A DNA stretch of 64,000 nt from Phallusia mammillata (taxonomy: Eukaryota), in assembly GCA_965637545.1 (NCBI GenBank), contig OZ281499.1, forward strand, positions 26,846,001 through 26,910,000, in the 5' to 3' direction. The notes beneath the pieces were generated by a model that ran no database searches, was not told the origin of the DNA, and saw nothing but the letters and a program-made list of their open reading frames with translations. Shown here piece after piece: positions 8,647-57,784 of the stretch; the first letter of the stretch is position 1, and each line of letters starts with the position of its first letter. A program made the position numbers and the translations under genes.

Positions 8647-10654
8647 CACTAGAAAAACCGGTGTGTTGTAACAACACGCCAATTTTGAAGCCGTATACAA
8701 CACACGACACACCGAGCCGTGTTGTGAGGCGGTGTGTTGTTTGGAGGTGTGTTGTTCAACGACACGCCTGCCGTGTTGTTTGAAGCTGCAGTTTCGCGAC
8801 ACACCTGGTGTGTTGTTTGAACACACTCATACAACACGCGTGTTGCGTGTTGCTTAGAGCTATAAAGCATGACACACCCAATACCGTTTTTTATTTTATT
8901 GTAAACAGTACCGTACCAACGAAATAGCGCACATATCGAAGAAACAGAACATAACGTTTAACAGAACAAACAAAACAAAGTTATGGCATGAATGTAACGG
9001 TGGGGGAAACACAGGTAAAAAATACACGCAAAAACAAAAGTTCAACTGCATGTCCGATGCTATATAATTATAATGTGCTCAACAAGGCATATTGCATATG
9101 CACAGTCATGGCATGTTCAATATCACTACAATAAAAATAACAAGTATTACAATGAAAAATCGAAACCAGAAGAAAACCTGTTCATTTCATTCTTATTGAC
9201 AACAACACTTGGATAACCAGGCGATGTTGCAAACTGGTCCTGTAAAGTAAATAACCAGTTATTAAACAAGGTTTTACTGCCAGTTAATGTGATTGTAATG
9301 GTTAAGGTTACATGAAATCAAAGTTTGTTGGAGTTACTAATGGATCTAATCAAAATACCTGTGTTTCGAAGATGACAACATTTCTTTTTTTTGTAGCAAT
9401 TTCCTTTCACAAACAATCAGCCAGCATATGATTATCTAAAGGTTCCCCCATGGCACTTTTGAGAACATCAGTTACGTTTACCATCTGCAAATCAGTAAAC
9501 ACCACATATATTTAAAATATGCTGGAGAAAGAGGCCGATTACTTAAAAGCCATTTAAACTCACATACCAAATGTCCCTTCAAGATTTCTGGTAGCAAGTG
9601 ATATTGAGTGTCCCTTAATGTTGATTGTCTAAAAACAAGTAATGTATATGAGGCAATGTATAAGTAATGTATTTTCTCAAATGTAACTATCTCAAACATG
9701 TTTACTTGTTTGCAACTCAGCCATAAACATTGGGTTTAATGCCTGCCATGTGTCGCCTTGTAACAAAATTGGTTCCTTCATAGAATTCCCTTGGTTGTTC
9801 AATAATCCATGTTATGCACAGTAAGGCCAGTTGCATCATTAGGTTTTGTACAGGACTCTGCAACAAATTAAACCACTTGAAATACGCAATCATTAGGCAG
9901 AAAGTTCGGGTATAAAGGAATTGATATTGTTGAAAGTTAAATTCTTTACCACTTTCAAGCACTTGCCAACAGAACTGTAATAATTTGGCAAAAAAATGCA
10001 AATAGAGGTCACTTCAATGCATGTTTTGTATGTGTTCTACTTGACAGTGATACCAAGTTGATATAAAAACCACTTCGCTCAGTCATTTGGTAACAGTCTA
10101 TTCTAATACAAAAAACAACAAGCCATTACAACATGCACAAAGCACAAACATATGTTTTATACATGCACAAATATATGTAAAATTGTAAATATACCAACCT
10201 TTATTAGATTTGCAACACCATCTTGTTCACATTGTCCAAAAGTCTTGAATACATTGAAACTTGTCAATTAATACTCAAATAACTCCTATTAGCCTTGATA
10301 TTGAGTCTCTTACTCATCAAGTTACTAAGTTTTAGTCAATCAAAAGAAAAAAGAACCTGAAAAGCCGTTTCGTGCGTTCCCGCCGTTACGGTTGAGTGAC
10401 TTCCAAAGCCAAAGGAAAGAAGGAAAGCAACAAAACAACACGGCGGCGTGTTGTTCTGTGCTTCTGGACTTGAAACCCATCACCTTGACCTTGAAACGAC
10501 ACACCTGGTGTGCTGTCCGTACTGTGCGGCGTGTCGTTTAGCGAATACACATCGATTATCGCGGTAACAACACACCTGCCGTGTTCTTGGAACACACCGT
10601 TAGTGTGGTTGAAACACACCGGCGTGTTGAAACAACACACTGGTTTTTGTAGTG
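8647..10654. mobile_element. CACTA/EnSpm-like non-autonomous transposon inserted in the La1 Thr-rich exon
   Basis: TIRs CACTAGAAAAACCGGTGTGTTG / CAACACACTGGTTTTTGTAGTG, TT duplication of the target gcggtt|gtagg, and subterminal arrays of aacac/gtgtt motifs at both ends. Confidence 0.8.
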
Positions 10655-12037
10655 TTGTAGGTGTTGTTTTTGTAGTTATTGCTGTTGTGGCTGTTGTAGG
10701 TGTTGTTGTTTCTGTAGCGGTTGTAGGTGTTGTTCCTGTAGTGATTGTTGTTGTTGCTGTTGTGGTTGTAGGTGGTATAGTTGATGTCGTAGTTGTTGTT
10801 GCTGTTCTGATTACCCCTACATTGAGTTCAGCCACACTCAGGATGCTACAAACGTCGTTTTGGCAACAGGCAGCCACACAGTTTCTGTAAAAACACGTGT
10901 ATATTACTCATTATAGATATCTTAAACTAAAAAAATATTTTTGTAAAATCAATTATTGGTCGCTATCATCAGTTTAAGTTTATTTAATTATCTTCAGGTC
11001 GCTACTGTGAGTTCTTGACCAGTCTAAACTTAAAAATAACTTACGTTCTGTTTCCACAAAGTCCAGCATCGCAGGCAGCCGCTGTCTGACACGAAACCTC
11101 GGTTGCTGAAACAGAAAGAAGTTTTAGTTTTAAAGCAAACGTCTTTCAATCTCATTTCAGACAACTCACAAACAAATCATTGTTTCTCGTTTCAATCCAA
11201 CTTTTACAAACCACGATCAACAATTATTTAATTGTTTTTTCAGTTATTTAATTTATATCTTATTGTTTAAGTTTAGAACCAACTTTTTTGGTTCCCATCT
11301 TCTATTCTTCCACTGTGGAAGTTCCACACCGATAGCCTGGAGCACAAGTGCTGATTTTATGAAAACTGAAATCGGTCCCACAGCGCACAATGTTGTTTAT
11401 GTCACTAACTGGTCGAACGTTGCACTCATCCGCATCATGGCAACATGCCGATACACAATTTCTGAACAGAAGAAAATTTGTGATCTCATTTAGCAAACCA
11501 TCCAATCTTTTTCAATTTTTTTTGAATAATCTTTGTCGATCACAAACTAAAATATTTTAAAGTTACGAAATTTACTCACGTGAAATTGTTGCAGAGCATA
11601 TTGCAAGTTTTGTCTGTCGAACACATTCCGGTTGTTGTTGTGACTGCAAATATAACTACGTTGTAGTGAGACTTAAGTGTCGAGCCTCTGTGTTAAATAC
11701 TTTAACTTGAGTAAGAATTATACTATATTATGAATAGTTATAGAGAAATGAGAATTAGTCGATCTGTTGGTTCAAAATCGAATGCGGACTTCCATGTTTT
11801 ATCAAATAAACTTTCCTCACCTCCATCAGTGGTAACTTCTCTCCTTGCGCATAACTCAGATCGCTGACATGTTTTCTTCTCAATAAGGGTTCCATTTGTT
11901 GTTGTTCTCGTCATGCATGTCACCTCACTAGTCATTAAGCCCACAATGTAGTTGCAGTTTGGCCGATCGTTGCAACACGCCGACCAACAATTCCTAAAAA
12001 TATGTTTTTGTTAATAATCCTGTTACGAATACGAAGT

Positions 12038-15310: not shown

Positions 15311-18291
15311 TTAAATCACGAACCAACCGAGAACCACAAGACACATTGTCATCAAAATATTAATTTGTGCTGCGTGTTTAGCACCAGATGTTGTTGCTGT
15401 AGTGATTGTAGGTGTTGTTGTTGCTGTAGTGGTTGTAGGTGTTGTTGTTGCTGTAGTGGTTGTAGGTGTTGTTGTTGCTGTTGTGGTTGTGGGTGTTGTT
15501 GTTGCTGTAGCGGTTGTAGGTGTTGAGGTTGTAGTTGTTGTTGCTGTTGTAGTATCCGGTGTTGTGGTTCTCCCTACATTGAGTTCAGCCGCACTCAGGA
15601 AGTTACATTCGTCGTTTTGGCAACAGGCAGCCACACAGTTACTGTAAGAAGATGTATTTTACTTATTATAAATATCTTAAAGTAAAAAAAGATATTTTAA
15701 TAAAATCCGATTTTGGAAATTTAAAAAACTTGCAATTATTGGTCGCTATCATCAGTTTATTTTTAATTAATTATCTTCAGGTCGCAACTGTACGTTCTTG
15801 ACCAGTCTAAACTTAAAAACAACTTACGTTCTTTGGAACACTATATACGGATCTGTTCATAAGTTTCATGGTGAAAATAACGGCCCAAATATGATGATAT
15901 CACTGATGATGGCATGAGCATTTGCCGAAACGTTTGAACAATAAAGCATGTCGCTTTTTACGTCTATTTGGGCCGTTATTTTCACCATTAAACTTACGTT
16001 CTCTTTCCACAAAGTCCAGCATTACAGGCAGCCGCTGTCTGACACGAAACTTCCTGTACTGAAACAGAAAGAAGTTTCGATTTTAAAGCAAACGACTTTC
16101 AATCGGATTTCAGACTCACAAACAAATTTTTGTTTCTCGTTTCAATCCAACTTTTACAAACCACCATCAACATTTTCACCTTTCAAGTGTTTAATTCATA
16201 TTTTGTTGTTTAAGTTAAGGACCAACCTTTTTGGTTCCCATCTTCTATTCTTGCACACTGATGGCCCGGAGCACAAGTGCTGCGTCGAACACTACTTCCA
16301 TCTGGTCTGAGATTTGTCACACAGCGCACAATGTTGTTTATGTCACTAACTGGTCGAACGTTGCACTCATCCGCATCATAGCAACTGGCCGATACACAAT
16401 TTCTGAACAGAAGAAAATGTGTGATTTCATTTAACAAACCATCCAATATTTTCGAAAAAATTTTGCTTTCGGAAAAGCTCAAAAATGTTTGTAGATCACA
16501 GACTAAAATATTTTAAAGTCACGAAATTTACTCACGTGAAATTGTCGCAGAGCATATTGCAAGTTTCGTATGTCGAACATATGGCGGTTGTTGTTGTGAC
16601 TGCAAACATATCTATGTTACAATGAGATGTAATTACCAACGTTACCTTGTGTCGAGCCTCTGTGCTAAGAACATTGACTTGACCATTGTTTTAACACAGC
16701 TATGAAAGATAGTAGAGAAATGAATAAAGAATTGGTCCATCTATTGGTGTATAATCGAATCCGGACTTCCGTGTTTTAACTTGCCAACTTTTCTCACCTC
16801 CATCAGTGATAACTTCTCTCCTTGCACAAAACTCAGATGGCTGACATGTTTTCTTCTCACTAAGGATTCCATTTGTTGTTGTTCCCATCATGCAAGTCAC
16901 CTCATCAACAAATTTAGCTATAGCGTCGTGGCTGCATTTTGATCGATCGTTGCAACACGCTGACCAACAATTCCTAAAGATATCATCTTGTTAATAATCC
17001 TGCTACGAATAGTAAGACGTCATTGTTAAACTGTGAATTTCATTATAAGCATCCTACTAATATAAAGTGTTATGGTTTGTACTTTGCCAAATGTGAAGAT
17101 CATTCTAGTCATTAGTCTATCCAGTAAATCAAGCCATGATATATCTTGCCATCCAATAAATCAACCATGATATATCTTGCCATGGTTGCTTTTTAAACAG
17201 GCCTTGTTATGATTCTTATCCCTCGTTGCCTGAAGCCACAGTGCGCAACGTTTTTGGCATTTTGAGCAAAGTTGCAATTATTCCGTTGTTTGTTTAAAGC
17301 CCTCAGGCGAACACGCTGGCTATATTTAGGCAACTGAATTATTTTGGACTTGAATGGGTTTTAGATTATCCAGTGGATCGGAAAACGGTGTCCATATTAA
17401 GTTCTCATAGTTCGGACCTTGTACAAATAGATACTGCTAAGATTCTCATGCGATCTCGGTACCTTACTTCACCATCGCATTTTTGTGTGTTAGCTAAGTT
17501 TGCCGCAGCAACAAATCTGTTGTTTGCATCGAGGCCTCGGGCTAATCTTGTCTTCTCGTTTTAACCAAAGAACTTACGCCGAAGAAATTCTTAGCATTCT
17601 GTTCCATTCACCATCACTCTTATAAGCTTATAGCTGATGTGTTCTTTACTTGGAAAAATATAAAACGTTTTTGTTTTGACCTAAATGTTTTTGCTTTTGA
17701 CCTTTCACAAACCGACCTTTCATGGTTTGTGTAAGGTCGATTTGTTTTTAACTAGTAATTGTTGCTGCGAGTTTGCTAATATCTGTGCTTTATTACAGTC
17801 AGCAAACTAAACCGGTATGTTCCTAAGATTGGGGAAAAACATATAATTATTCAAATATGTGTTAATTTCGAGTAAGGTATAGGGTGATTTAAATAACAAA
17901 CGCTTTTTACCATGTTTAATTTAAAGGTCTATTCAAGACTTCAATGAACAGTGCGTCATTAGGAATATTAAAGTTGACAATCGTCTTTGTTTTTCATACG
18001 TTGTTTGCCCTACACTTCAGCTTATGTAGCTAGTTTCTCACGGCAAATTGAATTAACTGATTCAAGATAAACACGTGACTCCTGCGCAGAGTTTATCGCA
18101 TGCAGTGGCGTCATCTTGGCATGTTTGAAAAAAAAAACTATCGTCCCGTCAAAACCTGTTTGAGGTAAATCACAGTAAGTCGAAGAAGCAGGACATTCTA
18201 TCGGTATATAATCTTTTTGTGCGCACTAGTTATTTGCGCACTCGTTAACATCAGAAGCGGCCATAAATACTACAACATGTGTCGGATTCAT
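15311..18291 (-). pseudogene. Three-LU-domain GPI-type gene copy La2/Lb1: exons 2-6 open, variant exon 1 inactivated
   Basis: Exons 16973-16798, 16599-16536, 16402-16227, 16058-15998, 15641-15311 are in phase and end in a Thr-rich stalk plus hydrophobic GPI-like tail. The upstream exon 1 (18291-18075, MNPTHVVVF...ECPASSTYC...CQDDATACDKLCAGVT) has an in-frame TAG (18226-18228) and a 1-nt shift in a poly-T run. Confidence 0.7.
15900..15937 (+). ncRNA. Minimal type I hammerhead ribozyme motif
   Basis: UCA-CUGAUGA-U-GGCA(8-nt loop)UGCC-GAAA-CG-UU-UGA: intact core, 4-bp stem II, palindromic ACGU stem III and 3-bp stem I, as in Penelope/retrozyme-type hammerheads. Confidence 0.6.
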
Positions 18292-18451: not shown

Positions 18452-18933
18452 TCAAAGAAACCTTGCGATGCCTTGAAAATAAGCAAACGGAATGTTTTCT
18501 ACGATTAGGAGAATTTTTTTTATTGTAGCAGGTATTGTTGCTGTAGTGGTAGTTGTTTTTGTTGCTGTAGTTGTTGTGGTTGCTGTAGTTGTTGTTGTTG
18601 CTGTAGTACTGGTGGGAGTTGTATTTGGGACAATTCCGGAGTTACAACAATCAGTTTCGAAAGCGCAAAGATTAGCTGCACTTAATGCGTTACATTCGTC
18701 ATTCTTGCAACAGGCAGCCGTGCAGTTGCTGTAAAAGTGGAAATTGCATAGTTAGTTTAACGATTTCCGTAGTTTTTAAAACTGAACTTGATTTAAGATA
18801 TTGACTGCGATAAAGTTCTTAGTATTTTAGTAATAATAGTGCCATTAAGAGATTTTTAAAAAAAAAACTATTGTTTTGTTACCGAAAATTCCAGCTTTGC
18901 AGGCGGCAGTCGTCTGATATGATACCTCGGTTA
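18452..18933 (-). pseudogene. Ly6-family 3' fragment Lc1 (penultimate and last exon)
   Basis: The last exon encodes NCTAACCKNDECN...LCAFETDCCN plus a Thr-rich tract. The preceding 61-nt exon has Cys losses and no GT donor. A mirror copy lies at 38262-38655. Confidence 0.6.
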
Positions 18934-28327: not shown

Positions 28328-28892
28328 ATGACAAAGTTAAGTTTGTTGCTTTTTGTTTGTTTGTTGGTTGGTTGCAATGTTGGTTGATCCAGGACACAGC
28401 ATGAAGAAATCCCCTATATTGGTGAGCATTAATGGAGGGTAAGATGGTTTGTAAACACAAAATACAAAACTTGAAATTTAATTGTCAGGAAATGTACAAC
28501 CAAGTTATATGTGATCCGAATATTTTGCCTAAAACTTTTCGTAGGGTTTCTGTTCCCTGGGATTTCGAAAACAACGAAGATCTTGAAATGTTTGAAGATC
28601 TTCTCAGAGGTAACAAGTGTTGACTACAATATATCGCTTGAGGAGTTTACAGTTTGTAATCTTCTCATATTAACTAAATACATCCGCAATATAAACCGCA
28701 ATGCTGCGGTTTAAACAACAAACCATAAATCTGCCCAGTGATATCACATTTTATCTTAAATACTTTTGTCAGGTCGGGAATCGAACCCACAACTCCACGA
28801 TTACAAAACCGATGGCATAAAATTAAACAAATGTTTTATTTCTTGCAGATTTCAAAGATGAACTGATTAAAAAAGACAGAATGAAAGGATAA
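28328..28892 (+). pseudogene. Subtype A copy A2, frameshifted
   Basis: A 4-nt duplication (gttg) in the signal-peptide codons gives an early TGA. Exons 2 (28545-28609) and 3 (28849-28892) are intact and near-identical to A1. Confidence 0.8.
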
Positions 28893-29832
28893 ACTGAAAA
28901 TACCGAAGTTGCCTTTATTCAGATGTGATCCGTAGTTGGGAAAGTTAATAAAATTATTTAAGTGCGGTTATTTATACGCTGTGCTACAATGTAAACAGAT
29001 TTAAACAATAATTGCTGAATTTAATTAAAGTCAACAAAACAAAACAAACGTCTTTGAAGTTTTTGCAAATGTGCATCACAGGTATAAAGAACATTTATGT
29101 TGAATGTAATCTTTTCATGTGAAAGCCGAATAGAGAGACTTAGACTGAAATGTGGGCCCTAAATATCAGCAGCAAACCTATGGTGCAACATATAGTGGAT
29201 TAAGCAACATAAGGAAAGTAGACACTTACCGAAAGTTTGCGGAAGACCAGGCGTTGAAAGTGCTGAAAGTTAGTCGTGTCAATTGTTGGTGGTTCTTCTC
29301 AAGTATCAAACAACATCAACAAAACTGTTTGCTAAACTCATTGTTAAAACGGGAAGTGCATACGGACGTTTGGTATGGATGGGCGATTTGAACGAGCTGC
29401 AAGCACTGTTTTGTATTGGAAGGCAGATCTGCGGTTAAGAGGGCGTTTCCTCTGCCTGGAAGTAGATTATGTTTATTAGTTCTTGACTTGTATGTAATTC
29501 CGTGATTAACATATGTTGGGTCGTTAATATCAACAACACTTTGTTTACAAAGTTAGTTGCTTCGCAAGAAATGGACGATGTGTTAGAATTATTATTGTTA
29601 GCTTCCAATAACGGGTTTCCCTTCAAAATTGTGCATTTAACTGTAACAAAAGTAAATTAACCCGATTTCAAATAGCATAAGTAAAACAACAACAGCTGTA
29701 CCACAGTTATATCACGATGCTCTTGAGCCCGCTTAAATTAGGAAAGTGTATTTTATCGTTTTGTGTGTTTGCAGCGAGTTAGACGCACGGCGTAATGTTT
29801 CTTATGTTTACAGTTGATTCCAAGTAGGAGAG

Positions 29833-30731
29833 ATGACGAAGTTAAGTTTGTTGCTTGTGGTTTGTTTGTTTGTTGCAATGTTAGTTGATCCAGGACACAG
29901 CAAGAAGAAGAAACGAAAGAAAACCACAATCCCGGTTATACGCCCTGTACAAGGAAGCATCAATGGAGGGTAAGATGTTTTAAACAGTGATTTCAAGTTT
30001 GAAATTTTTTGGCAACTGTAAGGAGTTGGACATATACAACCGAGTTTCAAACGATCTAAATCAGGCGCGATGAAATCCTGGCATCGCATGCGGCCCATGA
30101 ACACTTTCAGCTTACCGTCAGGCAAATACAATGTGTGTTTATTTAGGAGGTAACAAGTGCTTTATGACGGTATAAACGCGTTTACTTTAGGTAATATTTG
30201 GGTTTCAAAACATGGTGTCGATTAGAACAGCAAAGTTAGTTCTTCAATACAAATGAGGTTTACTATTTGCGGCAAGAATTTGCCAAACGATAATGTGGCT
30301 CTCCATCTTCTCAGTCTTGGAACATTTTGAGTTGGATAATTTACACGAAACTTTTTCGCTGGGTTTCTATTGCCTGGGATTTGGAAAACAACAACGATGG
30401 GAATGAAGATCTTGAAATGTTCGAAGATCTTCTCAGAGGTAACAAGTGTTGCTTACAAGATCTCACTTGAGGCGTTTGCAGTTTGTAATTTTTCCCATAT
30501 TAAGTAAGTATATCCGCAATATAAAGCCGCAATGCTGTGTTTTAAACAACAAACCATAAATCTTCCCAGTGATATCAGATTTCTTCTTAAATTCCTTTGT
30601 CAGGTTGGGAATCGAACCCACAACTCCACGAGAACAAAACCGATGAAATAAAATTAAACAAATACTTGATTTTTCTTGCAGATTTCGAAGATGAACTGAT
30701 TGAAGAAGACAGAATGAAAAGGATAAACTAA
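29833..30731 (+). CDS. Subtype A copy A3 (exon 1 KKKKRKKTTIPVIRPVQGSINGG); intron-1 acceptor mutated AG>TG, possibly non-functional
   Basis: Exons 29833-29969, 30362-30438, 30682-30731 are open and in phase, but the acceptor reads tttttcgctg instead of cgcag. Confidence 0.55.
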
Positions 30732-31230
30732 AAATATCGAAGTTGACTTTATTTAAATGTGAAACTGAGATTAAAACTTTAATAACTTATTTTATGTGTT
30801 ATTTAATTACAGATAACTGATTACTGAATTTAATAAGTTTAACAACAACAACATGTGTGCTCGATGTTTTTGTAAATGTGCATCACAGGCATAAAGAATA
30901 TTTATATTGAATGTAATCTTTACATCTGGCAGTAAGTCTACATTGTTGTTGCGGAGTTGATAGAAATGTGGAAAGTTTGTAAGTTGGAAGTTGCTTACGT
31001 TTATTATTTCTTGTTCCGCAGTTGCCTTGCTAGTCAACATATGCTTGGGTCGTTAACATCAACAACATTATACCTACAAAGTTGGTGTTTATGTGGAAGG
31101 CGGTGTTGGCAACGTAAGGGTTTGAAAGTGTTGGTTTGCATTCAAAGTTTTACATTTAAAGTGGGTTTCCTAAAGAGTATTTTACCAAGACAAACAATAA
31201 ATCCAAGAGGTGTTTTGTCATGGTTTAGAG

Positions 31231-35200: not shown

Positions 35201-37573
35201 ATGAACAAAATACTTGCTGTAGTCTTGCTGGTTGCTTTGATGTTGTTGGAAGCGCAACTAGTCAACAGTTTAAACTGTGTTGTGGGAACATATCCACCTG
35301 GATTTAACAACGCAGAATGTCCTGCTTCTGCTACTTATTGTGGATTGACAAAAACAACTTTTGACAATGGCTCTAAGATATCTGCTGCATCATGCCAGGA
35401 TGACCTCGTCGCATGCGATCAACTTTGCGCAGGAGTCCCGTAAGTATCAATTTCTATGATTCCAACTGGAGGTTTAAGTAAGTGAAATAAAAAAAAAAAA
35501 AAAAACACTTTACTTTAGAGTGACATGTTTTTAAAATGTTCAGCGGCCATCGGTTGATTAAAATGCTTAGTTGCACTTCACTTAAATGGCAGCTGTACAT
35601 TTTTTGGATTTAGTGTTAAATAAAGCAGGTTTTATAGGGTTAAGAAAATAGTCATTGAGCTTGTGGGGGTTGTTTTAGAAACAATGAACCAAACAAGGGT
35701 AAGGAAATAAATGAAACAGATTGTTAAGAAAACAATGGCTAAACCAGCTACACATGAAAGCTTATTTGCCGTTCGCCTAAAGGGCTTAAAACAAACAACG
35801 GAATAATTGCAACTTTGCTAAAATGTCAAAACGTTTCGCACTGTGACTTTAGGCAACGATGGATAAGAATCGTATCAAAGCCATTTTGAAAAGCAACCAT
35901 GGCAAGATATATCATCTTGATTTACTGAGAGACATATGACTAGTAATGAACTTCACATTTGGCAATGTTTATATCAAAACATAACACTCCATATTAGTAG
36001 AATGCCTATAATGACATTGTTGGATAATGACGTTTTCATATTCGTAGCAGGATTATTGACAAGAAGATATCTTTAGGAATTGTTGGTCAGTGTGTTGCAA
36101 CGATCGGCCAAACTGCAACTACAACACCATTTATAGTATAGTTTATGAGGTGACTTGTATGACGGGAACAACAACAAATGGAACCCTTAGTGAGAAGAAA
36201 ACATGTCAGGAGAGTGAGCTTTGCGCAAGGAGGGAAACCATTATTGATGGAGGTGAGGAAAGTTTTTTTTGGCAAGTGAATACATGGAATTCCGCATTTA
36301 TTTATAAACCAACAGATGGACTAATTCTTTATTCATTTCTCTACAACTGTTCATAATATAGTTCAATTAATACTCAATTCAAAGTATTTAACACAAAGAA
36401 TCGACATAAGGCAACGTTGTTAACTAACTCCCATTGTAACGTAGTTATGTTTGCAGTCACAACAACAACCGGAATGTGTTCGACAAAAAGAACTTGCAAT
36501 ATGCTCTGCAACAATTTTACGTGGGTAAATTTCGTGAATTTAAAACATTCTAGTCTGTGATCTACAAAGGTTTTTGAGCTTTTCCGAAAGCAAACAAGTT
36601 GGAAAAGATTGGATGGTTTGTTAAATGAAATCACAAATTTTCTTCTGTTCAGAAATTGTGTTTCGGCATGTTGCAATGATGCGGATGAGTGCAACGTTCG
36701 ACCAGTTAGTGACATAAACAACATTGTGCATTGTGTCACCAAAGTCGGACATGGAAGTATTTACGGGCCCAACACTTGTCCTCCGGGCTATCGGTGTGGA
36801 AGAACAGAAGATGGGAACTTTCCATTTGGGAAGCTAGAAGGTTGGTCCTTAACTGAACCAACAAAATATGAATTAAATAACTGAAAGGTGAAATTGTTGA
36901 TGGTGGTTTGTAAAAGTTGGATTGAAACGAGAAACAAAGATTTGTTCGTGAGTTGTCTGAAATGAGATTGAAAGTCGTTTGGTTTTAACCCAAAACTTCT
37001 TTCTGTTTCAGCAACCAAAGTTTCATGTCAGACAGCGGCTGCCTGTGATGCTGGACTTTGTGGAAACAGAACGTAAGTTATGTTTTAGGTTTAGAGTGGT
37101 CAAGAACTTACAGTAGCGACCTGAAGATAATTAATTAAACATAAACTGATGAGAGCGACCAACAATTGCAAGTTTTTCAAATTTTAAAAGTCCGATTTTT
37201 CAAAATATTATTTTTAGTTTAAGACATCTATTTTAATGAGTAAAATGCACGCGTTTTTTACAGTAACTGTGTGGCTGCCTGTTGCCAAAACGACGATTGT
37301 AACATGATGAGTGTGGCTAAACTCAATGTAGGGGTAACCTGGACAGCAACAACAACTACAACCTCAACAACAACTACAACCACAACAACATTTACAACCA
37401 CTACAGCAACAACAACACCTACAACAACAACAGCAACAACAACTACAACCGATACAGCAACAACAACACCTACAACCACTACAGCAGCAACAACATCTGG
37501 TGCTAAACACGCAGCACAAACAAATATTTTGATGACAATGTGTCTTGTGGTTCTGGGTCGGTTTTTGATTTAA
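35201..37573 (+). CDS. Intact secreted/GPI-anchored protein with three Ly6/uPAR (LU) domains and a Thr-rich mucin stalk (La3), 345 aa; exons 35201-35439, 36077-36252, 36457-36520, 36653-36840, 37012-37072, 37264-37573
   Basis: The six exons sum to 1038 nt in frame. Signal peptide MNKILAVVLLVALMLLEAQL; three 10-Cys repeats each ending CC-x4/5-CN; Thr-rich tract; C-terminal SGAKHAAQTNILMTMCLVVLGRFLI* resembling a GPI signal. Confidence 0.85.
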
Positions 37574-39814: not shown

Positions 39815-40349
39815 CAAGGCACAACATCAAGTTTATTGAGCTTTTCTGGCAAATGTGTTTTTATTCCGACGTTTCGGCGTCCTATACAGGTCGTCTTTAT
39901 CAGGGTAAATAACACTGAATGCGCGTGGTACAGTGCATGATGAACAAAGGAAAAAAGAATGAAACGCAAACACGTCACAACGCAACGAAAACACCGCGCG
40001 ATAACGAATGACTGGGCTTCTAATCTTTGAGCAATAGCCTGTAGCACGTTGAAAGAATCAGGTCTGTTTAGTAATTTATTGTGTTGCCAAGTTGATGAAT
40101 ATTTCATGACCCAAGAAATAGTATTTTCCTGTAGTCAGGCCCCCAGGCCAAAACAGACGCCGCATTGAAATCAATATGATACCGCGTGATTGGAGAGGGC
40201 CGACTTCTTCGCGTCGTTGTTGGCAACATCCCGTTGATGTTCTTTTCGTCGGGTGTTGAGTGACCTTCCAGTCTCCCCGATGTATATTAACGGTGACTCG
40301 GCGCAGGGAATGGAATATACAACACCTCGTTGTTCAAAGTTGTTGATGG
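39815..40349 (-). mobile_element. Penelope-like element 3' fragment (GIY-YIG endonuclease) with degenerate hammerhead at 39866-39905
   Basis: GVVYSIPCAESPLIYIGETGRSLNTRRKEHQR...SALSNH is the PLE GIY-YIG signature. It is followed by CUGAUAA...GAAACGUC (core G8>A). Confidence 0.85.
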
Positions 40350-42306
40350 TGTAGTGACCTTCAAGGTAGACAATTAACAACACTGCCGTATATCTGACTC
40401 TAATAAACCCAACTACACCTAAAGCACGCAAAACTGGTTTCACGTTCCCCCATTGTATTTCAATAAACATGCATTTGCTTTAACATCTTTCCGCTTTATT
40501 ACTGTAGCATTCTCCTGCATTTTTCCTTAGCACGTTTAATTGATTAAACACCATTTCATATTTATCGTTTTGGTTTCACATATAGTCATGTCAAATCTAA
40601 AATTATTTTTATACAGGGTCAACCTACTAGGTACTTAGAACGAATGTCATGATGGTTTTTTTATTATCAAGGTAGTTATTAGAAGGCCAATCTACAAGGT
40701 TCTTAGAACGCTTATAGCTGTATTGGCGTGAGCAAGGCCAATGTGATTTGACGTATAAAGACGATAATGTACTTACTGCTTGACAAGTCGTCGTCAGTAT
40801 CGATAGAAATCGTTCGAACCTCCAGTAGCATTGATCTATCTGTAAAACTACACTCAAAAAACAAAACATTAAATCTGCAACTTTGCGACGCTAACTATTT
40901 AGAGCAAACAAACTGCCATGTAAGAGTATTAGTAATAAACCAAACAAGAATATGCTTATCTATGAATGATAACGGTGTGCAATTTTCTATGCCTTAATGA
41001 CCAACTTTCGCTTGTAAGTCCATAGCGAGAAGCAGTCCTTATGTGCAAGGACTTAGAGACTATTGGGTCAGACATGTAGGTAGAAGGTAATAAAAATGAA
41101 ATAATTGTTGCCTTGAGTGCAACGGCCCCAATAACTGCTGTACGAGAGAGACGAAGATTTCTAAATATGTAGGCAAGTAGATATTTTTTGGACCGTATTA
41201 AGCATAAAGGTGACATTTCCCAGTAAAAATTATAGTCAAAACATGGTACAGTTGCTGCATTTTAAGATTAGCAATCGCAAGGTAGAGATTAAAAGTATAG
41301 GGAGTAGGCAATATCATTATTAGGTAATCAAATTCGTCCGTAAACAATAGTCAATCAATAATTATACTTACCTGCTATCCGATTCTCAGATCGCCTGCGG
41401 ATCTAAACAATCCGGCCTTTCGTTTAACGAGTTGCTGGAATCGGCACGCATCGACTACGACATGTTTATTGCCGGCGACAATTGTGTCCCTTTCCTTAAA
41501 AGACTGAAAGTTCGTTGGTTCGCTAATCAATGCGATTTGATCAGCGTTTTCAGCCAATGCTTCCATGGACAAACCGTAATCAGGCACAAAAAACGACTGG
41601 TTCAACAACTTTTCGGCAACCGGTACTACATCTTGGTTATCGCCCGGAGGAACCAAACTATCGACAGAGACACTAGGGCGCTTACTTTCCAACTTAACAT
41701 CGGGAAGCGACTCTTGTACCTCAGCAACAGGGTTAACGCCAAAAGCCTGTATGAGAGCCTGTTTTACATCATACGAAAGACAACCACCAACAGCACCCAA
41801 AATGACGTGACTAATCCGTTTCGCTTGTACCTCGTTCAACGCGGAGACAACTAAACCCATTTTCACAGCGATTTAGTTCACCAATCCCAAAACTACGCGC
41901 AGGATAAACTGGATAACGAGGCGTAGAATACGGTGCACGCGGTGGCTGGTTCGATAACGATGCGGCCTGGGCACTATCTGAAAACTTGACAGAATAATTT
42001 GAGCGGAGCTCAGTCTCAGAGTAATACAATACCGTTGGTGCAGTCCACACAGACTGGAAAGGCGTGTTATAACAATGTGTCGCAGCGCTTACAGAAACGG
42101 GAACGAAGTTAGCAATTCTCTGCATCATTAATTTAGGCGTTATTAACAGCGATTCAATCAGAAGGTTAAATGCGCGGAAATCAATATCACGGCAGAGGGC
42201 GTCACCAAATTTGTACTGACCCCGTGGGTAGACAATTAACAACACTGCCGTATATCTGACTCTAATAAACCCAACTAAACCTAAAGCACGCAAAACTGGT
42301 TTAACG
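40350..42306 (-). mobile_element. Short internally deleted Gypsy-like LTR element (LTRs ~42212-42306 and ~40350-40444)
   Basis: Two ~95-bp direct repeats, PBS-like TGGTGACGCC after the first, purine tract GGGGGAA before the second. Gag-like frames include LVVSALNEVQAKRISHVILG...LSYDVKQALIQAFG. Confidence 0.65.
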
Positions 42307-43566
42307 TTCTCCCATTGTATTTCAATAAGGCATGCCACGAAAGGTTAAACACGCAACACAAAAGTCACAACGCCAACGCGTGAGCTACACCAAAGCACGC
42401 TATTGTCTAATGAACTTGGTAACTCTTGGTAACTGATTTTTAGTTTAAAATACGTCGGTCTTTATAGAGTTCAGGTCACCTGTTGTTATGCCAGCGTAGT
42501 TGTAAAAACGTACGCCCGAGAAGATTAACTGAGTTCTAAACCGTAATTATTCTTTTGGTTGATTTTAAAAACGTCAACATGGCTGGAAGCCAAGTAATAC
42601 GTGGGTTACTGTTAACAAGTTAAAAACGATACAACGATAGCCTTAAGCCAGTATATGACCATCGTGGTGATTAGAAAACAGGTTTAATAGCCGGTCAAGC
42701 TTTTGTGTAGAAAAAAGGTGAGGTTTGACCGTGACAAATGGCTACGTCACGACAATTACATACAAGTTTTGAAATTAAAAATCCAAGTCCGATGTATGTT
42801 GAATTAAAAGTCCAAGGTCCGATACAATGGGATTTCGGGTGACTTAGTAGCTTATGAAAAGTACTAATATATAATCTCTTCTAAAACACGTTTAATATAA
42901 TATGCAAAGACAATAACATTAGATTACGACAGAGCGCTTTTCAATGTTCCAATACAACGCAACTTGAGATCACAACGCTACCACGTTTTTCCACCGCACT
43001 CACAACACTACGAACGACACGAGGCCCAAGCGAGAACTGCCTCAGATCGAAAACGAAACATGGCAGTCACAAAGTCACGTGATCTTTGGGTCCAATTACA
43101 ATGCACAAGCGCGACACGTCGATTTCTAAATTATTGTGCGAGAAAGCAATTGATTAAGGAAATGAATAAAACTGTACATGAGAACATGTCAACACAAAAA
43201 AGTGGATTGCAAATACAAACAAACGCAAAGTTGAAAATAAAGCAACAAACCTTTGAAACCTTAACTATTACAAGTGCATAAATAAGATAACGAAATGCTG
43301 TGCAAGAAACAAAGTAGGCGAGTTCGCTTGTCTGTGGTTGGTGCTTATTCCGCTGCGAGTCTATGTTTTTGTGACATTAATTTCTTTAACTTTTTTCTGT
43401 AACTTGTGTTAAGCGTTAAGTAAAGGTAATGGAATATATGCATGGTTGAAAAAAACGGACAAAACACGCTTGCGTTTAAAATACTACTATTTCAGGGTGG
43501 CCTTGCTCAGTTTCAACAGTGTTTTTAATATATTTCGGAGTTTTAGAAAATTTTAAAGCGACAGGA

Positions 43567-49406: not shown

Positions 49407-50254
49407 TATAACTTCTGCTTAAAATCAGCTGCTATACAAAAGCATTATTCCTTACATACTTCTCGGAAACAAGCTTCGCCCTCTAAACCATTGATTCTCA
49501 AACGCGGCTTTCAGGGCCGCATGCGGCTCCCAACTACTTATTTTGCGGCTCGCACCAGACCTCATAAAACGACCAAAGATCGCTATTCTAGCTTTCAAGG
49601 TAATAATCTTTAGTGATTTACTAAAGGGTCTCGTTTTTTTGTGGATCCTTACACAATTAAAATAGTACTATTTGGCCCCGACAATAAAAAAGTTTGAGAA
49701 CCACTGCTCTAAACCATGACAATGCGGCTTCAAAAAACCTCTTGGATTTATTGTTTGTCTTGGTAACATACTATTCAGGAAACCCGCTTTAAATGTAAAA
49801 CTTTGAATGCAAACCAACACTTTCAAACCCTTACATTGTCAGCAACGTCTTCCACATTGACACTAACTTTGCAAATAAAATGTTGTTGATGTTAACGGCT
49901 CAAGCATATGTTAACTAGTAAGGCAACTGCGGAACAAGAACTAATAAACACTGCCAACTTCCAACTAACGAACTTTCCACATTTGCATCAACTCCGCAAC
50001 AACAATGTAGACTTACTGCCAGATGTAAAGATTACATTCAATATAAATGTTTTTATGCCTGTGATGCACATTTACAAAACATCGAGCACACTTGTTGTTG
50101 TTGTTGTTGACTTTATTAAATTCAGTAATCTGTATTTAAATCTGTGTATCTATCTGTTTACATAGTAACAAAGCGTAAAATTAATAACACATAAAACAAG
50201 TTATTAAAGTTTTAATCTCAGTTTCAGATTTAAATCAAGGCAACTTCGATATTT

Positions 50255-51765
50255 TTAGTTTATCCTTTTCATTCTGTCTTCTTCAATCATTTCATCTTCG
50301 AATTCTGCAAGAAAAATAAAATATTTCCTTAATTTTATGGCCTCGGTTTTGTAATCGTGGAGTTGTGGGTTCGATTTCCGACCTGACAAAGGTGTTTATA
50401 AGAGAAATGTGATATCACTGGGAACATTTATGATTTGTTGTTTAAACCACACCATTGCGGCTTTATATTGCGGATATATTTACTTAATATGAGAAAAATT
50501 ACAAACTGCTAACGCCTCAAGTGAGATCCAACACTTATTACCTCTGAGAAGATCTTCAAACATTTCAAGATCTTCGTTGTTGTCGTAATCCCATGATTTT
50601 GTAGGGAATGATTTTGTAGGGGATGATTTTTTAGGGGATGATTTTGTAGGGGATGATTTTTTAGGGGATAATTTTGTAGGGGATAATTTTGTAGGGAATG
50701 ATTTTTTAGGGGATGATTTTTTAGGGGATGATTTTGTAGGGGATGATTTTGTAGGAGATGATTTTGTAGGGAATGATTTTGTAGGAGATGATTTTTTAGG
50801 GGATAATTTTGTAGGGGATAATTTTTTAGGGGATGATTTTGTAGGGAATGGTTTTGTAGGGAATGATTTTTTAGAGAATGATTTTGTAGGGAATGATTTT
50901 TTAGGGGATGGTTTTGTAGGGAATGATTTTTTAGGGGATGATTTTTTAGGGGATGATTTTTTAGGGGATGATTTTGTAGGGGATGATTTTTTAGGGGATG
51001 GTTTTGTAGGGAATGATTTTTTAGGGAATGATTTTTTAGGGGATGATTTTTAGGGGATGATTTTGTAGGGAATGATTTTTTAGGGGATGATTTTTTAGGG
51101 GATGATTTTGTAGGGGATGATTTTTTAGGGGATAATTTTGTAGGGAATGGTTTTGTAGGGAATGATTTTTTAGGGAATGATTTTGTAGGAGATGATTTTT
51201 TAGGGAATGATTTTTTAGGAGATGATTTTTTACGGGATGATTTTGTAGGGGATGATTTTTTAGAGGATGGTTTTGTAGGGAATGATTTTTTAGGGGATGA
51301 TTTTTTAGGGGATGATTTTGTAGGGAATGGTTTTGTAGGGAATGATTTTTTAGGGAATGATTTTGTAGGAGATGGTTTTTTAGGGGATGATTTTTTAGGG
51401 GATAATTTTGTAGGGGATGATTTTTTAGGGAATGGTTTTGTAGGGAATGATTTTGTAGGGGATGATTTTATAGGGGATGACTTTAAAGGGAATGATTTTA
51501 TAGGGAATGATTTTATAGGGGATAATTTTATAGGGGATGATTTTGTAGGGAATGATTTTTTAGGGAATGATTTTTTAGGGGATGATTTTGTAGGGGATGA
51601 TTTTATAGGGAATGATTTGATAGGGAATGATTTTATAGGGAATGATTTTATAGGGGATAATTTCGGGATTGTGGTTTTCTTTATGTTCTTCTTCATGCTG
51701 TGTCCTGGTTCAACCACCATTGCAACCAACAAACAAACGACGAGCAACAAACTTAACTTTGTCAT
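50255..51765 (-). CDS. Repeat-expanded subtype A gene A5: exons 1+2 fused (51765-50542), exon 3 at 50304-50255, one 1-nt frameshift inside the repeat
   Basis: Signal peptide plus KKNIKKTTIP, then 71 pentapeptide units running directly into WDYDNNEDLEMFEDLLR. One unit is 14 nt (T5 instead of T6 at ~51047-51051). With that base restored the product is 424 aa. Confidence 0.7.
50594..51663 (-). repeat. Coding 15-nt minisatellite, 71 units (K-S-[SF]-P-[KTI])
   Basis: Period-15 array gg(g/a)atgatttt(t/g)tagg on the plus strand; the 1064 nt of full units equal 71x15-1. Confidence 0.95.
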
Positions 51766-52755: not shown

Positions 52756-53364
52756 TATAACTTCTTCTTAAAATCAGCTGCTAATACAGAAGCATTATTC
52801 TTTACATATTTCTCGGGAACGAGATTCGTCCTCTAAACTATGACAAAGTAGTTTCAAAATAGCTCTTGGATTTAATGTTTGTCATGGTAGAATACTTATT
52901 AGGAAACCGCTTTAAATGTAAAACCCTAAATACAAACCAATGCTTTTGGACTGTTACGTTGTCAGTACCGTCTTTCACATAAACACCAACTTTGCAAACA
53001 AGCAACTGTTGATGTTAACGACTCAAGCATATGTTGACTAGTAATGCAACTACACATACAACTTCCAACTTACAAACTCTCCAAATTTGCATTAACCCCA
53101 CAATAACTTTGTTGGTTGCTGCTGATATTCAGGGCGTTCATTCGAGTATAATGAATGTTCTTTATTTCTGTGACGCACATTTACAAAAAAAAGTTGTTCG
53201 TTTTGATGAGTTTATTAAATTCAGCTATCTGTATTCAAATCTGTGTCTCTTTCTGTTTACATTGCAACATATGACGTAAAATTAATAGCACATAAAACAA
53301 GTTATTAAAGTTTCAAACTCAGTTTCACATCAGAATATTGACAACTTCAATATTTTTCATTTCA

Positions 53365-54213
53365 TCATTTTCTTCTTCTCTCTTCTTCAATTGTTTCATC
53401 TTCGGAATCTGCAAAAAAATTAAATATTTGTTTAAGTTTATGCCATCAGTTTTGTAATCGTGGAGTTTTGGGTTCGATTCCCGACCTGACAAAGGTGTTT
53501 ATAAGAGAAATGTGATATCACTGGGAAGATTTATGGTTTGTTGTTTAAAACACAGCATTGCGGCTTTATAATGCGGATATATTTACTTGAGAAAAATTAC
53601 AAACTGCAAACGCCTCAAGTGAGATCTTGTAAGCAACACTTGTTACCTCTGAGAAGATCTTCGAACATTTCAAGATCTTCGTTGTTTTCGAAATCCCACG
53701 CAATAGAAACACTATGAAACAAAAAAATTCAAATTATTTAGCTTAAAATGTTCCAAGGCTGGGAAGATGGAAGGCCAAATGAATGAGGACAAATACTTGG
53801 CAGACCATAAATAGGGACACTCATTTGCTGTTCTAATCGACGCCAGGTTTGGAAACCCAAATATACTTTAACTAAACGCGTTGATAGCGTCGTAAAGTAC
53901 TTGTTATCTCGTATATAAACACGCATTGTATTTGCCTGACTGTCAGCCGAAAGTGTTGATGGACCGCATGCGACTCACATGTCACAATTTGACCTGATTT
54001 ACATCGTTTGTAACTCGGTTGTATGTGACCAACTCCTCACAATTGAACTTGTATTTTGTGTTTAAAGCCATCTTACCCTCCATTGATTCTTCCCAATACG
54101 GGAGACAAACCCTGGATTTTGGTTTTCTTTCTTTTCTTCTTCTTGCTGTGTCCTGGATCAACCAACATTGCAACTAACAAACAAACGACAAGCAACAAAC
54201 TTAACTTGGTCAT
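53365..54213 (-). CDS. Secreted prepropeptide, subtype A (A4), 81 aa; exons 54213-54077, 53711-53647, 53408-53365
   Basis: MTKLSLLLVVCLLVAMLVDPGHS-KKKKRKKTKIQGLSPVLGRINGG-VSIAWDFENNEDLEMFEDLLRDSEDETIEEERRRK*; all splice sites canonical. Confidence 0.8.
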
Positions 54214-55144
54214 CTCTTCTGCTTGGAATCAACTGTGAACATAAGAAACATTACGCCGCGCGTCTGGTTCTCTGCAAACACACAAAACGATAAAAATACC
54301 TTTTTGCAATTTAAGCGAACTCAAGAGCTTTGATCTGTGATATAACTGCGGAACAGCTGTTGTTGTTTTACTTATGCTATTTGAAATCGGGTCAATTTAC
54401 TTTTTTCACAGTTAAAAGCACGATTTTGTAGGGAAATCCGTTAGTGGAAGCCAGCAATCATAATTCTGACAGTCCGTCTATTACTTGCGAAGTAACTAAC
54501 TTTGTAAACAAAGTGTTGTTGCTTTTAACGACCCAACATATGTTAATCACGGAATTACATACAAGGCAAGAATTAATAAACATTATCTACTTCCAGGCAG
54601 AGGAAACGCCCTCTTAACCGCAGATCTGCCTTCCAATACAAAACAGTGCTTGCAGCTCGTTAAAATCGCCCATCCATACCAAACGTCCGTATGCACTTCC
54701 CGTTTTAACAATGAGTTTAGCAAACAGTTTTGTTGATGTTGTTTCATACTTGAGAAGAACCACAAACAATTGACACGACTAACTTTCAGCATTTCCAACA
54801 CATAATGTTCCGCAAACTTTCGGTAAGTGTCTACTTTCCTTATATCTCTAAATTCACAATAGGTTGCAGTATAGGTTTTCTGCTGATATTTAGGGCCCAC
54901 ATTTCAGTCTAAGTCTCTCTATTCGACTTTCACATGAAAAGATCACATTCAACATAAATGTTCTTTATGCCTGTGATGCACATTTACAAAAACATCGACC
55001 AAAGTTTGTTTTGTTTTGTTGACTTTATTCAATTCAGCGAGACTTGTTTAAATCTGTTTACATTGTAGCGAAGCGTACAATTAACCGCACATAAAAAATC
55101 TTGTTAAGTTTCCAAAATAGGTGTTAGAGGCAACTTCGATATTT

Positions 55145-56913
55145 TTAGTTTATCCTTTTCATTATGTCTTCTTTAATCAGTTCATCTTCGAATTCTGCAA
55201 GAACATAAAATATTTGTTTAATTTTATTTCATCGGTTTTGTTCTCGTGGAGTTGTGGGTTCGATTCCCGACCTGACAAAGGAATTTAAGAAGAAATGTGA
55301 TATCACTGGGACGATTTATGGTTCGTTGTTTAAACCACAGCATTGCGGCTTTATATTGCGGATATATTTAATTATTATGAGAAAAATTACAAACTGCAAA
55401 CGCCTCAAGTGAGATCTTGTAACCAACACTTGTTACCTCTGAGAAGATCTTCAAACATTTCAAGATCTTCGTTGTTTTCGAAATCCCACAGAATAGGAAC
55501 CCTACGAAAAGTTTTATGCAAAATATTGAGATCATTTATAACTTGGTTTTGCATTTTCTAACAACTAATTTCAAGTTTTGTCATTTGTGTTTACAAAACA
55601 TCTTACCATTCGTTGATGGTCATCGATATAGGGATTAATTTTATAGGGGATTTCTTTATAGGGGATAATTTTATAAGGGATGATTTGATAGGGAATGATT
55701 TTGTAGGGGATGATTTTATAGGGGATGATTTCATAGGGAATGATTTTACAGGGGATGATTTTATAGGGAATGATTTTGTAGGGAATGATTTTGTAGGGGA
55801 TTTCTTTATAGGGGATGATTTTATAGGGAATGATTTTATAGGGAATGATTTTGTAGGGAATGATTTTATAGGGAATGATTTTGTAGGGAATGATTTTGTA
55901 GGGAATGATTTTATGGGGGATTTCTTTATAGGGGATGATTTTATAGGGAATGATTTTATAGGGAATGATTTTATAGGGGATGATTTTATAGGGAATGATT
56001 TTATAGGGAATGATTTTATAGGGGATGATTTTATAGGGGATGATTTTATAGGGAATGATTTTATAGGGAATGATTTTATAGGGGATGATTTTATAGGGAA
56101 TGATTTTATAGGGAATGATTTTATAGGGGATGATTTTATAGGGAATGATTTTATAGGGAATGATTTTATAGGGAATGATTTTATAGGGAATGATTTTGTA
56201 GGGAATGATTTTGTAGGGGATTTCTTTATAGGGGATGATTTTATAGGGAATGATTTTATAGGGAATGATTTTATAGGGGATGATTTTATAGGGAATGATT
56301 TTATAGGGAATGATTTTATAGGGAATGATTTTACAGGGGATGATTTTATAGGGAATGATTTTGTAGGGAATGATTTTGTAGGGGATTTCTTTATAGGGGA
56401 TGATTTTATAGGGAATGATTTTATAGGGAATGATTTTGTAGGGAATGATTTTATAGGGAATGATTTTGTAGGGAATGATTTTGTAGGGAATGATTTTATG
56501 GGGGATTTCTTTATAGGGGATGATTTTATAGGGAATGATTTTATAGGGAATGATTTTATAGGGGATGATTTTATAGGGAATGATTTTATAGGGAATGATT
56601 TTATAGGGGATGATTTTATAGGGGATGATTTTATAGGGAATGATTTTATAGGGAATGATTTTATAGGGGATGATTTTATAGGGAATGATTTTATAGGGAA
56701 TGATTTTATAGGGGATGATTTTATAGGGAATGATTTTATAGGGAATGATTTTATAGGGAATGATTTTATAGGGAATGATTTTATAGGGGATGATTTTATA
56801 GGGGATAATTTCGGGATTGTGGTTTTCTTTATGTTCTTCTTCTTGCTGTTTCCTGGTTCAACCACCATTGCAACCAACAAACAAACGACAAGCAACAAAC
56901 TCAACTTTGTCAT
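55145..56913 (-). CDS. Repeat-expanded subtype A gene A6, intact, 473 aa; exons 56913-55607, 55501-55437, 55194-55145
   Basis: Signal peptide, 79 K-S-[FS]-P-[IT] units, SMTINE, phase-2 donor TG|GTAAG, then WVPILWDFENNEDLEMFEDLLR-EFEDELIKEDIMKRIN*. Confidence 0.85.
55627..56811 (-). repeat. Coding 15-nt minisatellite, 79 units, with a 585-bp higher-order duplication
   Basis: Period-15 array; rare variant units (ttaca, ttatg) recur exactly 585 bp apart (55746/56331 and 55911/56496). Confidence 0.95.
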
Positions 56914-57784
56914 CTCTTCTGTCTCGCTGCAAACACAATCATAATTTGAGCGGATTTAGAAAAAATCTATGCGTTTAAGCTGTGGTAGGGCTGTTTTTTC
57001 TGCAATGCTATTTGAAATCGGCTTAATTAATATTTGTCCTGTTATTTAAAGCTAACAAAAGATCTTCCAATACATTGTCTTTTTCGTACCGAGCTACAAA
57101 CTTTGTCAACAAACTGTTTTTGATGTTAACGGCCCCACATATATTTACGGAATTACATGCAAGACAAGAACTAATCAACACAATCTACTTCCAGACAACC
57201 AGACCACACAACCGCATATCTGCCTTCCAACACAAAACAACTCTGTTTTTTCCAACACATTGTTTAATACTTCGTGATTCACACCGACAACTCACTGCAA
57301 TGTTGCAAACACTTTATGCGGACTAACAGATTAAACTTAATCTCTTGCTTTTCATCCCAAACCAACATATGTCACAATGTATTGCTGGAAGTTTGCACCG
57401 AAGTGAACTCAACTTATACACAGGAAGTTGTGATGTGAAATCCACATGAAAGTTTGATAAACATCCTGTTTCTAACTCATGTTGGATATTTGTGTTTTCA
57501 TGGGATGTGACAATGTGAACTTTGCAAAATACTGCAGTTAAGTTTTAACTATATTACCATCTCAATCTGCGCAGCTATTTCCACTCGAAAAATCCTATTT
57601 CCATCCGATACAACTTGCGTTTTCTTGCGTAAGCCACATACTGTGAACAGCCGCTGTCAGACCTATTTCAGAATTATTAAACTTGACAACAATCCCACAT
57701 TGAACTGATCTGATGATTTATTTTATTTTAGGTGACAATTCGAAATGGGCGCCCTTGAAGCTGATTGGTCAAACCACGGTGACT

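Follow-up and report, generated by a model that had tools for sequence, protein, structure and literature searches.

A putative young coding minisatellite in a structurally intact paralog of a clustered peptide-precursor family in Phallusia mammillata

The analyzed window, a 64-kb stretch of Phallusia mammillata DNA, contains about 12 related loci distributed over both strands. One of them, named A6 (55145-56913, minus strand), has the complete structure of a gene with three exons, the first of which accommodates a long array of a 15-nt coding unit. The start codon, both splice donors and acceptors, the stop codon, an AATAAA signal and an upstream region conserved among the paralogs are all in place. 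The array lies in a minus-strand open reading frame that opens at the ATG at 56913 and encodes a hydrophobic N-terminal leader of 23 residues, a polybasic stretch, and pentapeptides of the form K-S-F/S-P-I/T; the exon-1 open reading frame amounts to 436 amino acids. The short paralogs of the cluster served as the splice template, with a phase-2 donor ending exon 1, an exon 2 reading (V)S(I/V)PWDFENNEDLEMFEDLLR and an exon 3 reading FKDELI. On this template A6 splices at canonical sites (exon 1, 56913-55607; exons 2 and 3 in Table 1), and the predicted product is exactly 473 amino acids long with a pI of 10.7, in agreement with the length and coordinates that a preliminary description of this locus had given. 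The product consists of 22% Ser, 20% Lys, 17% Pro, 15% Ile, and 11% Phe, and carries 95 basic residues (K+R) against 15 acidic ones (D+E). The last 38 residues form an acidic tail with 13 D/E, the number claimed before for the propiece.

Table 1 Coordinates of the features of A6 and of its sister gene A5 in the 64-kb window.
Feature	Position	Strand	Basis or remark
5' flank and leader	56914..56990	-	Acceptor-like TTTGCAG 13 nt upstream of the ATG; conserved with A5, c1, c2, c4
Predicted signal peptide part of exon 1, MTKLSLLLVVCLLVAMVVEPGNS, 23 codons	56845..56913	-	AlphaFold2 helix at residues 3-17; putative cleavage site
Polybasic N-terminal stretch KKKNIKKTTIP	56812..56844	-	Common to short paralogs c1, c5, c11
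79-unit 15-nt coding array, consensus AAATCATTCCCTATA = KSFPI	55627..56811	-	Tandem Repeats Finder, unit cutting
First copy of the exact 465-nt block	56318..56782	-	Repeated at a distance of 585 nt (39 units) toward the 3' end
Second copy of the exact 465-nt block	55733..56197	-	Longest exact run at lag 585
Exon 1 end, SMTINE and two bases of a Trp codon, before donor GTAAGA	55607..55626	-	Short paralogs end in the homologous LVSVNGG
Intron 1, 105 nt, GT..AG	55502..55606	-	DNA contigs of runs X1 and X2 span 55460-55718
Exon 2, acidic, VPILWDFENNEDLEMFEDLLR	55437..55501	-	Splice model and paralog comparison
Intron 2, 242 nt, GT..AG, tRNA-like fragment at 55257	55195..55436	-	Splice model
Exon 3 coding part EFEDELIKEDIMKRIN with stop codon	55145..55194	-	Splice model
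AATAAA polyadenylation-type signal in the 3' UTR	55024..55029	-	Sequence
Sister gene A5, 71.5 units (array 50593-51663), intron 1 lost	50255..51765	-	Tandem Repeats Finder, sequence comparison

The related loci share a layout of signal peptide, short polybasic stretch and acidic tail, and can be divided into three subgroups. The first consists of c1 (5096), c2 (6860), c4 (28328), A5 and A6, which have the leader and the upstream sequence in common. The second, c5 (29833) and c11 (54213), has the same signal peptide with a different upstream region, and the more distant third subgroup comprises copies at about 31.5, 49.4, and 52.7 kb. The spliced c2 precursor is 71 amino acids long. The exon-1 cores of the short paralogs (KKKKRKKTKIQGLSPVLGRINGG, KKKNRKKATGISPILGSSYGG, MKKSPILVSVNGG) are short and basic and contain one SP(I/V) core each, as is the case for c1, c5, and c11. 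A single AAGAAATCCCCTATA is present in the first exon of each of the short genes at 6860(+) and 28328(+), which bears out the earlier claim that a short paralog holds a single copy of it. The signal peptide and the acidic exons had also been described as unchanged between the short and the expanded genes. They are conserved, but three residues of the signal peptide and several in exons 2-3 differ, and so does the C-terminus, where a 1-nt difference in exon 3 switches the ending from MKG to MKRIN in A5, A6, and c5.

Damaged copies are found within the cluster. In c4 (28328-28400, plus strand), a 4-nt GGTT duplication in the signal peptide ends the frame at a stop after 19 codons; from its sequence c4 is probably a pseudogene, despite seemingly intact exons 2 and 3. 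The copy at about 52.7 kb is represented by a match to the signal exon alone, with no acidic tail. Furthermore, A6 itself is a mosaic. Comparison of 55020-55606 with 6990-7560, 28455-29010, 30270-30850, 53230-53790 and 50130-50600 revealed that intron 1 and the 3' UTR are nearest to c2/c4, and intron 2 and exon 3 are nearest to c5/A5. This pattern of similarity suggests frequent gene conversion or unequal exchange within the cluster.

Two short elements outside the coding regions recur among the paralogs. TTTGCAG together with CGAGACAGAAGAG stands immediately 5' of the ATG (56914-56935, minus strand) and is kept in five paralogs, those with ATGs at 56913, 51765, 5096, 6860, and 28328; the TTTGCAG could be a candidate acceptor for spliced-leader trans-splicing. 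A tRNA-like T-arm fragment (GGTTCGATTCCCGAC) is present in intron 2 of at least three paralogs (A6, 55257-55271; c11, 53471-53485; c4, 28773-28787) and is perhaps the relic of a tRNA-derived SINE older than the duplications. Neither ARAGORN nor Rfam recognizes a tRNA or a SINE in A6 intron 2.

The array of A6 was resolved as a single one by Tandem Repeats Finder, with a period of 15, 79.0 copies in the assembly, 90% matches and 0% indels. Together with the open frame, this agrees with the preliminary count of 79 in-frame units. Cutting the array into 15-nt units yielded 38 copies of KSFPI (37 with the sequence AAATCATTCCCTATA), 18 of KSSPI, 9 of KSFPT, 6 of KKSPT/KKSPI and a few singletons, and the variants named previously (KSFPI, KSSPI, KSFPT) are among them. 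The unit pattern has 131 matches in the window against 0.03 expected, and all of them fall in the array of A6 or in that of A5. Written with one letter per unit type, the A6 array reads EB-AAAABAABAABBAABAABFCCACAABDCAG-AAABAABDC-AAAABAABAABBAABAABFCCACAABDCAG-HBIJKELMN, in which a block of 30 units is present twice. At the nucleotide level, the 465-nt stretch 56782-56318 is repeated 585 nt downstream with zero differences, so about half of the array stems from one very recent internal duplication. The AAB motif that recurs inside the block represents a 45-nt higher-order unit (KSFPI-KSFPI-KSSPI), and the divergent units are confined to both edges of the array. The exact duplicate at a lag of 585, the AAB pattern and the divergent edge units together point to unequal exchange as the mode of growth.

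The edges of the array retain the likeness of different short paralogs. Its 5' start, like that of A5, resembles c1 (KKKNIKKTTIPKLSPI), and its 3' end (KKSPI KLIPI SMTINE) resembles c2/c4. Since paralogs with a single unit exist in the cluster, amplification from one unit is the parsimonious direction; the opposite course, contraction of a long array to produce c2/c4, is a less parsimonious but conceivable alternative.

The sister gene A5 (ATG at 51765) provides a second, diverged array. It starts with the same leader as A6 and continues with 41 in-frame units, one unit of 14 nt, and 30 units in a shifted frame; the frameshift is located at about 51049 in the assembly, where one A is missing from a run of six. 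Intron 1 is lacking in A5, whose array is fused directly to exon 2. The original reading frame is kept across this joint, a hint of constraint in the past. The interior units of A5 have drifted to KSSPK/KSFPT, and its first units are KSFPI as in A6. Between the two genes, identity amounts to 92% over 733 nt of upstream flank and to 83% over 582 nt of downstream flank. Given that the flanks have diverged by 8-17% and yet KSFPI-type units occupy the common 5' edge, a proto-array probably existed before the A5/A6 duplication, and each array has probably been homogenized separately since then. The freedom of A6 from indels since the split of A5 and A6 could reflect selection.

We searched for relatives of the expanded and the short proteins. 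A word-indexed protein search returned nothing for the 436-residue exon-1 open reading frame of A6 or for the 71-residue c2 precursor, the ESM Atlas gave no usable match, a search of the JGI metagenomes for an exact two-unit pattern gave no match, and Pfam gave nothing for the 71-residue parent. An exhaustive phmmer search gave 3187 matches. The 14 that were inspected are unrelated low-complexity proteins with a five-residue period (QSSPV, VKSSQ, bacterial PLGSF, GSFPI/GSFPL), and none of the best 150 of the 3187 contains at least two KSFPI-type motifs. Against Pfam, A6 matches only Extensin_1 (PF02095), with 95.6 bits, below the gathering cutoff of 105; as Extensin_1 is a proline-rich repeat family, we read this match as periodic composition, not as homology. 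A pentapeptide-repeat beta-helix was also considered and rejected, with no such Pfam match at E<=1 and no strands in the AlphaFold2 model.

The model of the first 240 residues of A6 has a mean pLDDT of 53.5, and its only helix, at residues 3-17, corresponds to the predicted signal; the prediction is consistent with a disordered chain. The repeats place one Pro at every fifth residue and contain no Gly. Tyr and SPKK are missing from the whole exon-1 product, Gly and Cys occur once each, and the dibasic sites are limited to eight KK pairs. These counts do not sustain the analogies to mussel foot protein 1 and to SPKK DNA-binding motifs that had been proposed for the repeat. Mussel foot protein 1 and the SPKK motifs share with A6 the use of Lys-rich short tandem repeats. 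In contrast to mussel foot protein 1, the exon-1 product of A6 lacks Tyr, which makes DOPA chemistry impossible. In contrast to SPKK repeats, it lacks the tetrapeptide; SPKK acts on nuclear DNA, whereas the A6 product has a predicted signal peptide.

The uninterrupted frame of A6 carries no weight as a sign of function. Because the 15-nt unit is a multiple of three, the flanks stay in frame at any copy number, and selection is not needed to keep them so. Moreover, three of the six frames are without a stop across the array (that of the gene, one more on the minus strand and one on the plus strand), which renders the open frame uninformative on function. The open plus-strand frame, a 442-codon open reading frame at 55616-56941 (+) with GNDFI/GDDFI repeats, was discarded as a by-product of the antisense strand; it lacks a signal peptide and a family context, and its Pfam match is marginal and attributable to chance.

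Variation among the units shows no sign of constraint on the unit sequence and looks neutral, with the qualification that about 12 independent variants give such tests little power. Compared with the consensus, the A6 units carry 12 distinct substitutions, 3 synonymous and 9 non-synonymous, where the random expectation is 10/45 synonymous. The variants fall on codon positions 1, 2, and 3 in numbers of 3, 5, and 4, with no excess at the third position, and 3 of the 15 unit positions are free of variants, against about 3 of 15 by chance (counted from the variant lists). The zero indels beside these 12 substitutions are unremarkable. A5 behaves alike, with synonymous variants making up 2 of 11 before the frameshift and 1 of 6 after it. 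At the level of the whole gene, comparison of six paralogs gave an identity of 96% for the exon-2 core against 91% for the introns, and of 85% for exon 3 against 91% for intron 2. These differences between exons and introns are too small to show selection.

Public sequencing runs were searched for words of the whole gene and of exon 1 alone, and no run holding them is recorded as RNA. In thirteen runs of the same species that are presumed to be RNA, the share of sampled words present is 0.00. This is a weak negative result; the tissues of these runs may exclude an expressing one. The only real holders of the array words are three runs (X1, X2, and X3) from two or three studies; they cover introns and intergenic DNA evenly, and for this reason we take them as DNA. 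One further run (X25), tentatively RNA and from another organism, holds 7% of the words and was rejected as a chance match of 33 nt with unrelated flanks. In two of the DNA runs, a contig of 259 nt at 55460-55718 confirms the passage from the array through intron 1 into exon 2, with no differences in X1 and one intronic difference in X2. The fusion junction of A5 is likewise reproduced by a short-read contig of X1, with the joint 55487->55695 on A6 coordinates and AAATCAT joined to GGGATT; no contig with this array-to-exon-2 fusion was seen among those aligned from X2 or X3. At the array edge, the summed word depth reaches about 140, 57, and 24 times the single-copy depth in X1, X2, and X3, respectively, a quantity not equivalent to copy number. 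Its spread might hint at differences in array copy number between the samples.

Based on the sequence, we read A6 as a young coding minisatellite driven by unequal exchange, housed in a paralog with complete gene structure, one of a cluster of secreted peptide precursors that is restricted to its lineage and turns over fast, and we give this reading about an even chance of being correct. One exon-1 unit of 15 nt (K-x-S-P-I) would have been amplified in place via slippage and unequal exchange. The array would first have reached the 45-nt higher-order unit KSFPI-KSFPI-KSSPI, and the latest step would be the internal duplication of 585 nt, by which the array roughly doubled. As the unit length is divisible by three, each step would automatically have left the reading frame, the signal peptide and the later exons intact. 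If the promoter is active, the gene would yield a secreted, intrinsically disordered polycation with a net charge of about +80, an exaggerated form of the polybasic segment of the parent. Judging from its composition, such a product, if translated, should bind polyanions; it may act by attaching, through electrostatic and cation-pi (Lys-Phe) contacts, to polyanionic surfaces, for example microbial envelopes or the sulfated glycans of tunic or mucus.

The preliminary description had interpreted the locus as a neofunctionalization. Its structural part holds, in that the layout of a precursor of about 70 residues was turned into a 473-residue repeat protein by in-place amplification with all signals intact. 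Its functional part gains no support from the tests made here, without being refuted by them: the frame is kept automatically, the variation looks neutral, the RNA runs contain no array words, and A5 is frameshifted.

An alternative is that A6 is a silent or decaying copy and that its array is a neutral minisatellite which by chance is still open, a possibility that we consider rather unlikely. The wrecks in the cluster, namely the stop in the signal peptide of c4 and the copy near 52.7 kb without an acidic tail, speak for it, as do the frameshift of A5, the antisense frame that is equally open, the lack of array words in any RNA run listed, and an exon 3 conserved no better than intron 2. However, not one element of A6 is broken, from the ATG, splice sites and stop codon to the AATAAA and the upstream region, and conservation of the exon-2 core slightly exceeds that of the introns. 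If A6 is silent, it would be an ordinary coding minisatellite in a quickly duplicating and decaying gene family, and a caution that an open frame over a multiple-of-three repeat is no evidence of function.

It is doubtful, and in our view quite unlikely, that A6 represents an expressed and selected new gene for a secreted Lys/Ser/Pro/Phe polymer (adhesive, coacervate-forming, matrix or antimicrobial) that is no longer neutralized by the acidic propiece. Such a gene would account for the intact signals and the product in frame across three exons, the strong excess of basic over acidic residues, the large arrays retained by both A5 and A6 despite the divergence of their flanks, the nearly invariant K at position 1 and P at position 4 of the units in both genes, and the original frame kept through the intron loss of A5. 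It is opposed by the absence of array words from the RNA runs, the lack of relatives in the protein searches, a unit variation that fits neutrality, the frameshift in the sister gene, and the lack of Tyr, SPKK and repeat Gly, by which the named analogues do not transfer. In addition, half of the array was duplicated with zero differences, so its present size has been little exposed to selection. We find it rather improbable, too, that some adult or larval tissue makes a new secreted polycationic Lys-Phe repeat polymer from A6, and perhaps also from A5 should the 1-nt deletion there be an error or a rare allele, and that this polymer serves as a self-coacervating or polyanion-binding matrix, a glue or an antimicrobial coat. 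The 64-kb cluster, with the single-unit parents and a frameshifted sibling of A6, would then preserve a stepwise series of gene birth like that of the antifreeze glycoprotein/trypsinogen locus. If the product is made, one small cluster would illustrate how a long repetitive protein with a structural or defensive role emerges from a tiny secreted peptide gene. Copies of the parent type, expanded ones and broken ones are neighbors, and a recent doubling is visible, which would then make the early birth of a repeat protein testable in a chordate relative.

It is very improbable that faulty assembly of a repetitive stretch produced the copy number of A6 or the perfect duplicate of 465 nt: although the unit count inside the array is that of the assembly only and the best DNA holder has about two thirds of the sampled words, an array of 1.2 kb should fit within a long read, the 3' junction is reproduced in short-read contigs from two samples, and the summed depth in X1, while not a copy number, is similar in magnitude to the 150 units that A5 and A6 together have in the assembly.

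The proposed growth of A6 as a coding minisatellite within a secreted-peptide gene has a close analog in the antifreeze glycoprotein gene of notothenioid fishes. That gene arose from a trypsinogen-like protease gene by amplification of a 9-nt element, with the signal peptide and the 3' end kept (Chen, DeVries and Cheng 1997, summarized in PMC6410882). In that gene and in A6 alike, a secreted parent gene supplies the signal peptide and the 3' end (PMC6410882), a short coding element is tandemly amplified (9 nt there, 15 nt here), genes of the parent type adjoin in the cluster, and pseudogene copies are frameshifted. The two cases differ in that the antifreeze glycoprotein has a demonstrated function, expression, selective driver and polyprotein processing, whereas A6 is known from its sequence. 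In A6, unlike the antifreeze case, the middle exons of the parent are kept, and the unit was coding beforehand.

The layout of the family as a whole recalls the precursors of antimicrobial peptides in Ciona, which consist of a signal peptide, a cationic segment and an anionic C-terminal region (PMC7387483). The linear cationic antimicrobial peptides of ascidians (Ci-MAM, clavanins, styelins) share with A6 this three-part order and the same host group, and their families resemble the A6 cluster in being clustered with conserved signal peptides (PMC7387483). In contrast, A6 has no sequence similarity to them, its cationic part is not an amphipathic helix, and the charge of its repeat region is about six-fold that of its acidic tail.

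With respect to the kind of product, the plant PRPs (Extensin_1, PPVYK-type) and the mammalian basic salivary proline-rich proteins resemble the predicted A6 protein in being secreted and basic, with short tandem repeats of Pro and Lys. Repetitive proline-rich secreted proteins are encoded by one large exon, are disordered, and change in length by unequal crossing-over. Unlike the PRPs, A6 has a single Pro per unit instead of Pro-Pro, no Tyr for cross-linking and no common descent with them. By analogy, the mode of origin that we propose for A6 is already known from the antifreeze glycoprotein and its trypsinogen ancestor, and the kind of protein from salivary proline-rich proteins and mucins.

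Other features of the window lie among the members of the cluster. Arrays with units of 27 nt and 9 nt, rich in ACA/TGT and Thr-rich if coding, are located at 8487-8756, 10649-10812, 15389-15553, 18535-18607, and 37343-37498, and are presumably the mucin-like stalks of neighboring genes. An open reading frame at 40171-40470 (-) contains a GIY-YIG-like motif (IYIGETGRSLNTRRKEHQRD) and is accompanied by more long open reading frames at 41375-42338; by its sequence, this region may be a mobile element of the Penelope type, with one half of the peptide cluster on either side.
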